A stretch of 64,000 nt of DNA from Calcarisporiella thermophila CBS 279.70 (Eukaryota; Fungi; Calcarisporiellomycota). The notes under the pieces were generated by a model. That model made no database searches and was not told where the DNA came from. It was given only the letters and a program-made list of their open reading frames with translations. The stretch is from contig NW_027192198.1 of NCBI RefSeq assembly GCF_041956535.1, forward strand, positions 504,714 to 568,713, read 5' to 3'. The position numbers were made by a program, and so were the translations under genes. Shown one piece after another: positions 40,093 to 45,159 of this stretch; the stretch's first letter is position 1; each line of letters opens with the position of its first letter.

Positions 40093-41509
40093 ATGCAGCT
40101 ACGACCGCGGGCTAGTATTACCAAAAAATTGCCAGCTATTACTGGGCTTGCTAAATCCCAAATCACAGATGATCTTGACTTAGCCGGAAAAGACAAGATT
40201 ATCAACACCGATGCTGAACCATTGCCTGTAGAAGAATGCTCTGGCAATTTTATCAGTCCTGTCGCTTCGAAAAATGATGCTTCGGTAGTAAAAATTCATC
40301 CTAAAAGAAAATTAGGAGATATCGGGCCAAAATCATCTTCAGCTTCTATTCCACCGCCTGATTGGCTTTCAACATACACAGCAATCCGTGATTATCGGAA
40401 AACTCATATAGGTTTGCCATTCATTTTTATTTAGGATGAGTCAAAATTAATTTTGTTAATTTATATTTAGCTCCAGTGGACACCATGGGCTGTGAACGGC
40501 TTGCGGAATATGGGGAAAATATAGATCCAAAGGTTAATAAATTTATTTTTATCATGTTTGCGGGATTTAACATTATAACCTATGTAGGTTTCGCGGTTCC
40601 AAACTCTCGTTGTAAGCTTTTTAGAATAGGTTTTGACATTTCACATTAATTTTTCTGATTTTTATATATATCCGGATTTTTCAACGTACAGTCCCTAATG
40701 TTGTCATCTCAAACGAAAGATACAGTCACCGCGGAAGCAATGAGAAACTTACAGCGGAAGCTTCCAGGAGGTCTTTCTATCAATAGTGTGCTGGCTGCTA
40801 GTGAATTAGACCTCCAGAAGTTAATATGCAAAGTTGGATTTTCTAGTCGAAAGTCAATGTAATATTATGCAATATCTTAGGTCTATCATTTCTTTATAAC
40901 TCACTTTTCATTTTGTACAATAGATTTATCAAAGATGCTGCTCGTATCTGCCTTGAAAAATACAATGGTGATATCCCTGACACTTTGGAGGGACTTTGCG
41001 CGCTTCCTGGAGTAGGACCGAAAATGGTATGCTTATCCATTAATTTGCTTGTCATATTCAAAAATATAACACTTTTTGATCCTTTAATTAGGCTCATTTA
41101 ACAATGCAATGTGCCTGGAATAAGTAATAGAAATGAATATGTAAATTTAAAAATTACAGAATGAGACTAACTTCTTTTTAGAACAATTGGAATTGGAGTC
41201 GATGTGCACGTTCATCGAATATGCAATCGCCTAGGTTGGTGTAAAACAGCCGGTGGGTTACCTGAGGATACACGAAAGGTAATCCAATAACCAATATATC
41301 CAGTATATCATCCTTATATTATAACTCGTTGATTATTTAAGGCACTCGAAAAGTGGCTCCCTCGCGAATATTGGCGTGAGATTAATGCAATGCTAGTCGG
41401 ATTTGGTCAAACGGTATGTTTACCTCGTTATCCACGCTGCTCTGATTGTCCTGTACGCGACGCTTGTCCATCTGCTTTTAAAGAAGCAAAAAAATCAAAA
41501 GTAAAGTAG
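40093..41509 (+). CDS. NTH1: Endonuclease III-like DNA glycosylase/AP lyase with 4Fe-4S motif
   Basis: [14 protein letters not shown]|[10 protein letters not shown], Hh[20 protein letters not shown] and [26 protein letters not shown]. Confidence 0.95.
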
Positions 41510-41757
41510 TTAATTTTATAATGTAATATAGTAAGGCGCATTCTTTATACATCACCCTACTCCTGTTAAATTTCAATAAATATCTAATAATAGCTAAAAG
41601 GCAAGAATATAGAATAGTATTTCACTAGTTGAATCTATATTATAGTTACAAAGCTCTTTGTGATTAAATTCATAACAGTCTAAAGAGTACAATTTGACTT
41701 GAATTCAAAATATTTATTTATAGTTATGCTTAGTATCATTAATACCATACACATCAA

Positions 41758-42651
41758 TTAATCGCCTGTGCCAGTAAGTTCCCAGAGTGATAATCCTGTA
41801 ATTCTGCGCGTGGAACCAGATTTATTAATCGAATGGATAGCAGCTAGTCGTGTTCTTGGGAAAGAGGGGGTATCTGGAGCTTGCGATGGTTCTTCAATTG
41901 GAAAAAGTACTGCGGTGGCATTCGTTTGAATTAACTCTTGTGCTTCTTCAGCTGTTAATATTCCTGTTGCACCAGGGTCCCTATTTGTAGCTCTTCTCTT
42001 TGATACAGTATTTGCAGATAAGGACGAAGATATTGCTAATGCGAGCTGTAAATCTTCGTCATAAGGATTATTTGAAGTTGTTTTTGAAGAGCTCGCTCCA
42101 TGGGTTGTTAAATACGAGTGTATGATGGTATCGGTGCGAAAATCTTCATCTATATCTTCGCATAGAGTTGCAGAATAGTTGCGTGATATCCTGTATTTCT
42201 GTCTACATGTAATACGAGATACACGGTCGGCACAAGATGGCATTGGAGTTTGGTTCCCTGACAATAAACAGCGCACTATCGAGATCATCTCTTGAGTAGT
42301 AATGCCTTTTTTCTTCATACATCGCTTTATATGTAGTGTTTTTTCGCTATGTGTGACGGAGGATCGTGTCCACCTCTTTTCACAGATAGGACACCAATGT
42401 AAATTATCAAATAGAGTGAATTCGTGGATATTACGCGGATCTTGCACATTTTCAGTACCGGCGAGTTCATCGAGGCAGCGATTTAGGTGCTGTTCGCGCT
42501 GTGAACAATTATAAATTGAAATATCTTTGCCACAGATTTCGCATAAACTTTTACATTTTATTCCGTCAAGACACTGGTTTACGTGAACTTCCATTTGGTT
42601 TAGGTCTAACAGAAGACCACATATAGGGCAGTCAGAGTAATTGCGTTGCAT
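41758..42651 (-). CDS. SLX4 N-terminal-like protein: three UBZ4 (C2HC) fingers + MLR-like region; single exon, 297 aa
   Basis: CPICG..HVNQC, CEICGKDISIYNCSQREQHLNRCLDE and CPICEK..HIKRC, then EDLQLALAISSS..TPSFPRTRL..SLWELT. Confidence 0.78.
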   Translation of the reverse strand: MQRNYSDCPICGLLLDLNQMEVHVNQCLDGIKCKSLCEICGKDISIYNCSQREQHLNRCLDELAGTENVQDPRNIHEFTLFDNLHWCPICEKRWTRSSVTHSEKTLHIKRCMKKKGITTQEMISIVRCLLSGNQTPMPSCADRVSRITCRQKYRISRNYSATLCEDIDEDFRTDTIIHSYLTTHGASSSKTTSNNPYDEDLQLALAISSSLSANTVSKRRATNRDPGATGILTAEEAQELIQTNATAVLFPIEEPSQAPDTPSFPRTRLAAIHSINKSGSTRRITGLSLWELTGTGD

Positions 42652-42809
42652 GTGAAAACATATTTACTGAAAACTGTCTCATATACGATTTCATACTAGT
42701 ATCATTTGCTGCTCCGCCACAGATCATATAGGTATTATTCCTGCGTATTATTAAGTTAAAACGGAAATAAGTTGACATTTAACTTCATCCAAAATAAATA
42801 TCTTCTAAG

Positions 42810-45159
42810 ATGTCTACTTCCTACAAACCACGTCGTGCCAACAGTGCTCTAGGAGATAGTTCAGATGTCTCAAGTTCTGTTAATGACAGTGCAAGAAAGA
42901 GACAATCTAAAAAAGATGAGGTATAAATATGATGAATTGATGAACATTTAAATTCTTTCTTATTTCCAAAGAATGAGATAAATTCTTTTTTATACCCACT
43001 TATATATGTTATATGTTATAAAATATAGGCAATTCGCAGAAAAATTGAACAAGAACTTTCTAAGAAAAAACGCAGTAGCCCTCGCTATACTCGGCAATCC
43101 ACTCGAAAGCAGGTTCAGGGCACTGTGAGCTCCTTGCGTATGTCGCCAGCCCATACTGTTCGTGAAAACATTACAGTGCTGGAAGCGAGCCAATTAATGG
43201 CCGCTAAACGGAGTGATTGCGTCCTTGTAGTTGATGATGACGACCATTTATGCGGCATTTTTACCGCGAAGGATCTCGCTTTCCGCTCTGTTGCAGAAGG
43301 TTTAGATTCTCGGTATATTATAATTGCATCAATAGCTATTTATATGTATTCCCAAAAGTAAAGTATTAAATTATACATCATTTATAGCGGCACGCCTGTA
43401 TCAACTATCATGACCAAGAATCCTCTCTGTGTTACAACTGATGCCTCTTCAACGGAAGCCTTGAGTACCATGGTGCAGCGAGGATTCAGACATTTGCCTG
43501 TAAGTTTTACCCTTTCGGTTTTCTAAAGTGTTCTTATCTATGTTAAACTTTTCAATAGGTAACTAATGAAGAAGGCGATGTAGTTGGTTTGCTCGATATC
43601 ACCAAATGCCTTTACCAGGCTGTTGACAAAATGGAAAGAGCATTTAATACTTCAAGTAAATTTTATGATGCACTCGAAGGAGTACAATCTGAATGGAGTT
43701 CCTCTGGCCTTCCATTTCTTCAATATATGGAAGCTCTCCGGGAAAAAATGTCTTGCCCTGATGTTAGTTCCGTATTAGACGGAGTTCAACCTGCTGAGGT
43801 TGGAGTCCGTACGAGTGTGCGGGAGGCAGCTAAATTAATGAAATCAGTGCATAAAACAGCCGTTCTGGTTATGGAAGGCAATAATATAGCTGGAATATTC
43901 ACAAGCAAGGATATTGTTTTACGTGTCATTGCTGCCGGGCTTGATCCGGCCACCTGTAGTGTAGTACGAGTAATGACTCCACATCCAGACACCATCACTC
44001 CCACAACTACCATTTTGGATGCTTTAAAGAAAATGCATGGTAACAAGCATTTTTCTCCTTGCAAGAATCCTCTTAATTTAATAAGATATTTATGACAGAT
44101 GGCCATTATCTAAATCTTCCTGTGCTCGAAGGAGATACTAACCAAGTCGTTGGAGTGGTCAATGTGCTTCAATTAACTTACGCTACTTTGGAGGAGGTAT
44201 ACATATTATATATATAATTTTTAGATAATAACTAATCGAAAATTTTATTCAAATCTCCTCACCAGATTAATAGTATTGAAGGACAAGATGAAAACAATGG
44301 TCCAATGTGGAATCGATTTTGGCAATCTTTTGTTCCCGACGGTTCTGAAACAGCATCTGTGGTGTCAGATTCCATTGCACCCTCGCATTCTGCATCTAAT
44401 CTACATGGTATGACACCATCCAATGTGTCTAGGAATTCTTATTCGCAATACCCTGAATCTCCTAATTCATCGCGCCCATTTACTCCTGATAATACTTATC
44501 CACTATCTGAAGTTCATCCCCATGAATCAGCATCAGCTGTCGGCAATAACGAGGAAAATTCAAGCATAGTCAATTCTAACCAGCAGAATGATACCACTTT
44601 TACCTTTAAATTCAAATCTCCTTCTGGCAAAGTTCACCGTTTTGTTTCTGAGGCGAATAACCTCGGAAATATTCGTGAAATCGTCAAAGCCAAACTAGTT
44701 ACAGAGCGCTTCAATTTAGAGGAACTTGCAGCATCAATGTCCATTGCGCCTGGAACAAACAATGAAGACGACTGGCTTGTGCTTAGCTATTTGGATGACG
44801 AAAATGATCACGTCCTTATTACCAGTGACATGGATCTGCTTGATTCAGTACATGTGGCAAAAAGGCAGGGTTCTGATAGAGTATTGCTGTTTTTGCATGA
44901 CCACACAGTTCAAAACCAAAGTGGTACAGCTGAACCTGCCGTTTCTCAGGCCAGTCAATTAGTATCGTCCGAATCCGGCAATAATAGTCCTGAAGTTGAG
45001 CCAGTTCCCAGTGACATAGAAATTTCCAGCCAAAAGAAGGAAAGCAAAGTACCGGAATATAATCTTCCTATTCCCCAAGAACTTCTATTACCAGGTGCAA
45101 TTGTCACATTGGCTGCCACTATTCTAGGAGTATTTATTGTAAACCGCCTTTCTCGTTAA
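42810..45159 (+). CDS. CBS-domain/PB1 protein with C-terminal TM anchor (Mug70/CBSCBSPB-like)
   Basis: RKRQSKKDE|AIRRKIE, four CBS repeats (GIFTAKDLAFR, RGFRHLP, GIFTSKDIVLR, HYLNLP), PB1 (FKFKSPSGKVHRF..LSYLDDENDHVLITSD) and a hydrophobic tail. Confidence 0.92.

Follow-up and report, generated by a model that had tools for sequence, protein, structure and literature searches.

A stand-alone UBZ-MLR gene in the fungus Calcarisporiella thermophila, a probable product of SLX4/FANCP gene fission

In a stretch of 64,000 nucleotides from the fungus Calcarisporiella thermophila CBS 279.70 (RefSeq assembly GCF_041956535.1, contig NW_027192198.1; hereafter the window), we describe a single-exon gene for a protein of 297 aa that is probably the N-terminal UBZ-MLR module of the SLX4/FANCP scaffold, set apart by gene fission as a gene of its own. 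Calcarisporiella thermophila represents the phylum Calcarisporiellomycota, an early-diverging fungal lineage. The open reading frame (ORF) occupies positions 41758..42651 on the minus strand, and its frame is unbroken. Profile comparisons establish that it is homologous to, and colinear with, the part of SLX4 that precedes BTB. By the same alignments, we show that the homology extends into the XPF-binding region, of which the Calcarisporiella copy has the first half only. In SLX4 proteins, the CCD (PF09494) binds SLX1, SAP binds MUS81, and BTB dimerises in animals. A first-pass annotation of the window, made from the letters alone, had read the ORF as a single exon of 297 aa with three C2HC fingers, the motifs ILTAEEAQELIQ..AVLF and TPSFPRTRL, and a terminal SLWELT. 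All of these are present.

Homology to the part of SLX4 that precedes BTB

An exhaustive phmmer search of a library of 1.8 billion proteins, with a cut-off of E<=1e-3, finds 132 relatives of the 297-aa protein, far more than expected by chance. In the long matches (1500-2600 aa), query residues ~21-294 align at residues ~100-500; in all five of the long proteins scanned with Pfam, BTB and PF09494 are both reported and the match comes before BTB. With our own hidden Markov models (HMMs) built from these domains, the CCD is found in 38 of the 132 matches and BTB in 28, such that all matches longer than ~830 aa and several shorter ones carry one domain or both. Among the long matches with a name are SLX4 of the aardvark and an SLX4-like protein of a gastropod. 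The C-terminal 108 aa taken alone match the CCD-bearing proteins of Bifiguratus, Mortierella and chytrids, and one BTB-bearing protein, and these matches always fall after the fingers and before the BTB or CCD.

The likeness does not depend on the zinc fingers. We aligned with hhalign the post-finger regions of 47 short proteins to the segment between the last finger and BTB in 24 SLX4s that have BTB and CCD. With the fingers thus excluded, the two profiles match with a Prob of 98.6% and an E-value of 1.4e-15 over 107 columns, from a UIM-like block to the LW helix. We also searched all PDB sequences with A1, a profile built from 29 family members over their full length. The best match is human SLX4, chain D of the XPF-ERCC1 complex in 9QED/9QEE, with an E-value of 3e-11; Rad18 and FAAP20 reach only 0.2-0.3. 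Chain D ends in ...FYTARLVPPLV, which places the chain at human SLX4 285-555. The A1 profile aligns with it twice, at UBZ-2 and its trailing helix and again at chain residues 120-252 (~human 404-536, ending F-L-W). Both results agree with the proposal of the first-pass annotation that the C-terminal region is the SLX4 MLR.

When the query is placed in a multiple alignment with the Mucorales proteins, with the fused fungal forms and with animal SLX4, six colinear blocks are shared. Block 1 is UIM-like, DEDLQLALAISSS in the fungal protein against SEDLLVAMALSRS in mammals. Block 2 is a basic patch. Block 3 is a helix, with TAEEAQELIQTNATAVLF against DSAATWQWTGERVVQLF. Block 4 is TPSFP.TRL against TPPLPASRIL, and block 5 is SLWEL against LLWEG. 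Block 6, [FY]-x-[ST]-x-[FL]-[IL], is found in all but a few sequences; mammals have FYTASL, with F545, Y546 and L550.

The features of the gene, with the spacer that follows it, are as follows.

41758..42651, minus strand: complete single-exon gene, putative stand-alone SLX4 N-terminal (UBZ-MLR) module, with stop codon TAA at 41758-41760.
42571..42630 (aa 8-27), minus strand: finger 1, a UBZ4-type CCHC finger with an H-V-N-x-C-L-D helix; C8, P9, C11, H23 and C27 are nearly invariant.
42475..42543 (aa 37-59), minus strand: finger 2, equivalent to SLX4 UBZ-1 (..REQHLNRCLDE) by BLASTP; C37, C40, H55 and C59 are invariant.
42262..42393, minus strand: finger 3 (aa 87-111) and trailing helix (aa 119-130), equivalent to SLX4 UBZ-2 by profile against 9qed_D and by BLASTP; pLDDT ~90.
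42103..42189 (aa 155-183), minus strand: acidic cluster and F171, then a predicted beta-hairpin; F171 is nearly invariant.
42007..42063 (aa 197-215), minus strand: UIM-like helix DEDLQLALAISSS, assigned by pattern, with a predicted helix at 199-215; first conserved MLR block.
41899..41961 (aa 231-251), minus strand: helix, aligned with human SLX4 helix 476-492; AF2 predicts helix at 234-249, pLDDT ~90.
41845..41871 (aa 261-269), minus strand: TPSFPRTRL, equivalent to mammalian STPPLPASRIL by alignments and profile.
41770..41793 (aa 287-294), minus strand: LSLWELTG, which makes up the first half of the XPF-binding motif, with W290 as the counterpart of human W531.
41510..41757, no strand: AT-rich spacer of 248 bp between convergent stop codons, covered by GT and frame scans.

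In a pattern scan, aa 8-27, 37-59 and 87-111 each fit a C-x2-C-x(n)-H-x3-C finger. The helices of the fingers have the features specific to SLX4 in SLX4 order, H-x-N-R-C-L-D-E as in UBZ-1 and then H-L/I-K-Q/R-C with a trailing helix as in UBZ-2. Fingers 2 and 3 align with UBZ-1 and UBZ-2 of aardvark SLX4 with 33% identity over 107 aa (pairwise BLASTP, E 1e-13), and finger 3 with its trailing helix aligns to residues 48-90 of 9qed_D, about human 332-374. Finger 1 is a second finger of the UBZ-1 type, which has no counterpart in vertebrate SLX4 and does have one in many invertebrate and fungal SLX4s. The first-pass annotation took this third UBZ for an extra one. That is probably not so: among the 37 CCD-bearing matches, there are 17 with three fingers, a gastropod and chytrids included, and 17 with two, so the third finger is probably ancestral and not an addition in Calcarisporiella. 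The distribution suggests that the three-finger state probably came first and that one finger was lost in vertebrates.

Throughout the 29-member alignment, all 12 zinc ligands, the Ser residues of the UIM-like block and W290 are invariant or nearly so. The pattern of a UIM, an acidic run followed by a hydrophobic-x-x-Ala-x-x-x-Ser core, fits aa 198-208; the Pfam UIM is not reported there. The counterpart of DEDLQLALAISSS (aa 198-210) in mammalian SLX4 is SEDLLVAMALSRS, and this first MLR block agrees with the UIM consensus in both fungal and mammalian sequences (in P0091 at about aa 405-420). Among titles and abstracts, we find no publication that describes a UIM in SLX4. The motif ILTAEEAQELIQ..AVLF lies at aa 231-250. 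The layout at 42103-42189, with acidic cluster, Phe and hydrophobic strand (..DEDFRTDTIIH..), is SIM-like, and all three elements are kept in stand-alone and fused fungal forms; they cannot be aligned in vertebrate SLX4.

Could the protein instead be a generic UBZ/UIM ubiquitin receptor of the RAP80, Rad18 or WRNIP1 kind, with an MLR likeness that is convergent low complexity? Three results point that way. The look-alikes proposed by a language model are RAP80 (0.89) and TRAFD1/XAF1 clusters, at 0.88-0.89, below the trust mark of 0.9. When the 297-aa protein is searched as a single sequence, PDB returns only a weak match to the Rad18 UBZ. The UIM-like block matches peptides of Hrs (E 0.029) and ataxin-3 (E 0.2) when the family profile is run against PDB sequences. 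The AF2 model (mean pLDDT 71) has confident beta-beta-alpha fingers, which superpose singly on the UBZs of FAAP20, WRNIP1 and Rad18 at 1-2 A over 25-32 residues, not significantly; Foldseek with this model against PDB gives nothing significant. The likeness of the 297-aa protein to RAP80, Rad18, WRNIP1 and FAAP20 is limited to the fingers and the UIM-like helix, whereas the region without fingers matches the SLX4 linker at 1.4e-15 with six blocks in SLX4 order. Moreover, CCD-bearing SLX4s are among the top matches over 220-280 colinear residues, and SLX4 leads the PDB matches by at least eight orders of magnitude. No RAP80 protein appears among the named or domain-scanned matches, and no RAP80 structure among the PDB matches. 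We regard the generic receptor as very improbable. The best matches are not Rad18 or other UBZ proteins, the alternative that the first-pass annotation named: the long matches are SLX4, and so is the best structure.

Two loci for one scaffold, and their distribution in fungi

The first-pass annotation suggested that this fungus encodes a split SLX4, and a separate gene for the other half does exist. A PF09494 search of the genome (28 Mb) finds one locus, on contig C2, an unbroken ORF of 509 aa. Its product matches SAP weakly and the CCD clearly, and is 100% identical to VTP21DRAFT_4474 (public model of 503 aa). The UBZ-MLR profile leaves no trace in this SAP+CCD protein, and finds no second copy of the module in the genome; conversely, the Pfam scan and our BTB and CCD HMMs find no CCD, SAP or BTB in the 297-aa ORF. 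Judged by these domains, the two genes are complementary halves and not paralogues. Calcarisporiella thus has a Slx4 of the yeast type (SAP and CCD, as in S. pombe and S. cerevisiae), which shares no detectable region with the 297-aa protein.

The genome also encodes components of the wider pathway. An XPF gene with several exons is on contig C31, a MUS81-like ERCC4 gene on contig C1, and ERCC1 and SLX1 are encoded as well. FANCD2 is recovered as nine exon matches at C17:145306-150742, FANCI at C28:204979-205869, and FANCL at C7:382047-382300. FANCD2, FANCI, XPF and ERCC1, which the first-pass annotation named as genes to look for, are therefore all there. The presence of FANCD2, FANCI and FANCL agrees with published work in which early-diverging fungi retain the ID complex.

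An apparent split may arise from an incomplete gene model, in which the ORF would be the first exon or exons of a full-length SLX4 with the BTB, SAP and CCD exons elsewhere in the transcript. A precedent for such an arrangement is found in Bifiguratus, whose fused gene has a predicted intron of ~60 bp between the two halves, precisely where the family ends. In Calcarisporiella, by contrast, a convergent endonuclease III gene has its stop codon 248 bp further on, and the stretch from the LW codons to the stop of the ORF contains no GT donor. The only CCD of the genome is on contig C2, together with SAP in one unbroken ORF, while the 297-aa ORF is on contig C8, which excludes splicing of one to the other at the level of the genome. 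The window spans C8:504714-568713, so that the locus is ~0.5 Mb from the start of a contig of probably 1.24 Mb, and nothing at the UBZ-MLR locus points to a break in the assembly. The next gene after the orthologue in Rhizopus and Umbelopsis is Dis3L2-like. We give almost no credence to an artefact of annotation or assembly.

The stand-alone architecture is not confined to Calcarisporiella. The first-pass annotation proposed a split SLX4 for this fungus, and Mucorales and Umbelopsis have the stand-alone gene too. The best-scoring matches of the search are short proteins, 230-520 aa, with neither CCD nor BTB, from the Mucorales Apophysomyces, Phycomyces, Rhizopus, Circinella, Fennellomyces, Cokeromyces, Pilobolus, Radiomyces and Dichotomocladium; Umbelopsis also carries the short stand-alone form. 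Databases list these proteins as hypothetical or 'UBZ4-type domain-containing', with one called a '5'-flap endonuclease'. As the closest relatives of the Calcarisporiella protein, the stand-alone UBZ(x3)-MLR proteins of Mucorales and Umbelopsidales match it with E-values of 1e-24 to 1e-12 and 27-33% identity (for example, Rhizopus microsporus CEG63436.1, Rhizopus azygosporus A0A367JCH2, Apophysomyces KAG0165650.1 and Umbelopsis nana GAB5586153.1). They differ from it in that they keep the second half of the XPF motif, and often have an S/K-rich N-terminal extension.

The orthologues of Rhizopus microsporus and Umbelopsis nana are on contigs of Mb size, with unrelated genes on either side and no CCD exons after them. 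In both, the gene directly downstream encodes a Dis3L2-like RNB exonuclease, a common neighbour that indicates orthology of the stand-alone genes across the two orders. Calcarisporiella has not kept this synteny; there is no RNB gene on the contig of the window. A separate SAP+CCD gene in Mucorales has been reported (PMC11061109). Our word-index searches with the 297-aa protein, with the canonical Slx4 and with its SAP-CCD part each return only the query itself, and so give no direct view of the Mucorales SAP+CCD gene.

Fused forms, with the UBZ-MLR module followed by the CCD in one protein, are found in Bifiguratus (787 aa, with the UniRef name SLX4), in Mortierella, and in the chytrids Synchytrium, Borealophlyctis and Quaeritorhiza. 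Pfam confirms PF09494 in Bifiguratus, Mortierella and Borealophlyctis, and our own CCD model matches all five. The Bifiguratus adelaidae Slx4 (OZJ03080.1) aligns with the 297-aa protein over 280 colinear aa with 27% identity (pairwise BLASTP, E 5e-19) and also has a SAP-like stretch. The other accessions are Mortierella KAF9121241.1, Synchytrium TPX36927.1, Borealophlyctis KAJ3293520.1 and Quaeritorhiza KAJ3087014.1.

The Bifiguratus adelaidae gene (MVBO01000105.1) consists of a first ORF, the predicted ~60-bp intron and then the SAP-CCD part. If the intron were left unspliced, the first ORF would end 14 codons past the sixth block. The intron lies where the stand-alone proteins end, so the fission point coincides with that exon boundary. 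The fused fungal form is probably the ancestral state, and the Bifiguratus arrangement could be either that ancestral state or an intermediate poised for fission. In a maximum-likelihood tree of 23 UBZ-MLR modules, fungi are apart from animals (100/100), and the base of the fungi does not resolve, with the fused forms on long branches; a single fission and several fissions are thus indistinguishable in this tree.

As an unusual case amongst the relatives, P0020 (3997 aa) has paired fingers at ~245/287 and again at ~3008/3050, five UIM-like motifs (three of them ~600 aa apart), BTB and CCD. This gene model seems to run together tandem copies of SLX4 or internal repeats.

The XPF-binding motif and the proposed function

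In human SLX4, residues 526-552 are the main XPF-binding segment, as seen in the 2025 cryo-electron microscopy structure of XPF-ERCC1-SLX4IP-SLX4(330-555) (PMC12804970). Residues 529-535 form a short helix that inserts W531 into a hydrophobic pocket of XPF, and residues 536-552, which include F545, Y546 and L550, are extended. A further helix, 476-492, docks on XPF when DNA is bound and is needed for full stimulation of cleavage (PMC12804970).

The Calcarisporiella protein has counterparts of both helices, and its L289 and W290 align with human L530 and W531, where W290 is nearly invariant in the family. In a model of the binding motif built from other family members (53 positions), the query reaches 34, and nearly all Mucorales and Umbelopsis proteins reach 49-53. 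Two other family members, P0022 and P0064, also end directly after the W-helix. This end of the ORF right after the LW helix, without an equivalent of F545/Y546/L550, was overlooked by the first-pass annotation. A hidden C-terminal exon, a read-through or a frameshift that would restore the FY..L block is ruled out: no canonical GT donor occurs from the LW codons to the ORF stop, and no downstream frame holds a remnant of the missing block when compared with the family model. The second half of the motif being absent, the protein is expected to hold XPF less firmly than the Mucorales orthologues and human SLX4 do, or in a different way.

In its order of blocks, the 297-aa protein is the same as the N-terminal part of human SLX4/FANCP (~285-555) and the engineered 'mini-SLX4'. 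It differs from human SLX4 in being a separate gene, with one more N-terminal finger and without the 536-552 segment, and in having none of the BTB, TBM, SIM, SAP and CCD elements; the identity is low, ~21% in the MLR and 33% in the fingers.

From these alignments we infer that the protein binds XPF and ubiquitin. In the mechanism we propose, the fingers, and possibly the UIM-like helix, would bind ubiquitin conjugates where forks are damaged or stalled, and the LW helix would put W290 into the XPF pocket while the helix at aa 234-249 docks on XPF. XPF-ERCC1 would in this way be recruited and stimulated without a tether to SLX1 or MUS81, and the 297-aa protein may act as an adaptor for crosslink repair. 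More broadly, we put forward, as a tentative proposal that may well turn out to be wrong, that SLX4 has undergone natural fission, once or more, at the boundary of MLR and SAP in Calcarisporiella, Mucorales and Umbelopsidales. The fission would have produced an autonomous, ubiquitin-guided recruiter and activator of XPF-ERCC1 in a crosslink pathway of the FANCD2-FANCI-FANCL type, independent of the half that binds SLX1 and MUS81, with Calcarisporiella holding XPF by the Trp and the activating helices alone.

Several points weigh against the reading of the ORF as an SLX4 module that binds XPF and ubiquitin. The Pfam scan of the 297-aa ORF reports nothing above threshold. To our knowledge, the UBZ-2-type helix of human SLX4, which corresponds to H-I-K-R-C in finger 3 here, does not bind ubiquitin. 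The ORF ends 7 residues past W290, and the equivalent of human 536-552 with F545/Y546/L550 is absent. In human SLX4, mutation of F545, Y546 or L550 impairs XPF binding (PMC8599992; PMC12804970). A complex prediction for aa 225-297 and two further chains, each an exon-encoded piece of the helical domain of XPF, scores 0.00 and is evidence neither way.

The early end of the ORF and the human mutations bear on another explanation, that the gene is a decaying relic of the fission: a true homologue of the SLX4 N-terminus that no longer binds XPF in this fungus and persists at most as a ubiquitin-binding protein, such as a competitor or reader at sites of damage. Nearly every orthologue in Mucorales and Umbelopsis has retained the [FY]-x-[ST]-x-[FL]-[IL] block, which is absent from this ORF and in which single substitutions are enough to impair the binding of human SLX4 to XPF. 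Yet the frame of 297 codons is intact, and the 12 zinc ligands, the serines of the UIM-like block, the helix of the 476-492 type and the W-helix are conserved. That P0022 and P0064 end at the same point suggests a tolerated variant over decay. We consider such a relic unlikely.

Neighbouring genes and what the split means

The first-pass annotation gave ~250 bp from the ORF stop to that of a convergent NTH1 gene, and the measured distance is 248 bp, the stop codon TAG of the convergent gene being at 41507-41509. This gene ends in a Cys-rich C-terminal tail of the endonuclease-III type and has an HhH motif in an upstream exon, which together fit endonuclease III. On the other side, a divergent CBS/PB1 gene has its ATG at 42811, 159 bp (42652-42810) from the ATG of the 297-aa ORF, so that a very compact bidirectional promoter must serve both genes. 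Upstream of the ATG of the 297-aa ORF there are just 4 in-frame codons, for an open frame of 301 aa. The public protein model of this gene has 278 aa and begins at M20, which removes the ligands C8 and C11 of finger 1. These two residues are nearly invariant in the family, and the ATG at 42651 is therefore most likely the true start; the public gene model, which cuts off the first finger, stands corrected.

A survey of the Fanconi pathway in early-diverging fungi, in which SLX4 was detected by PF09494, reported UBZ and MLR to be absent from fungi and called this a gap (PMC11061109). Contrary to that survey, the UBZ-MLR module is present in fungi, which fills the gap. We have found no publication that connects SLX4 with Mucorales as a split gene. 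The novelty is a variant in domain architecture, by gene fission, of a known scaffold, and not a new system.

If our proposal is true, the segment with F545/Y546/L550 is dispensable in some lineages. The arrangement would be a natural separation-of-function allele of FANCP, with the half that recruits XPF and reads ubiquitin and the half that binds SLX1 and MUS81 on two polypeptides. Mucor and Rhizopus are genetically tractable, and Calcarisporiella thermophila, being a thermophile, may suit biochemistry. With these fungi it becomes testable whether XPF-ERCC1 must be physically coupled to the other SLX4-bound nucleases for the unhooking of crosslinks.

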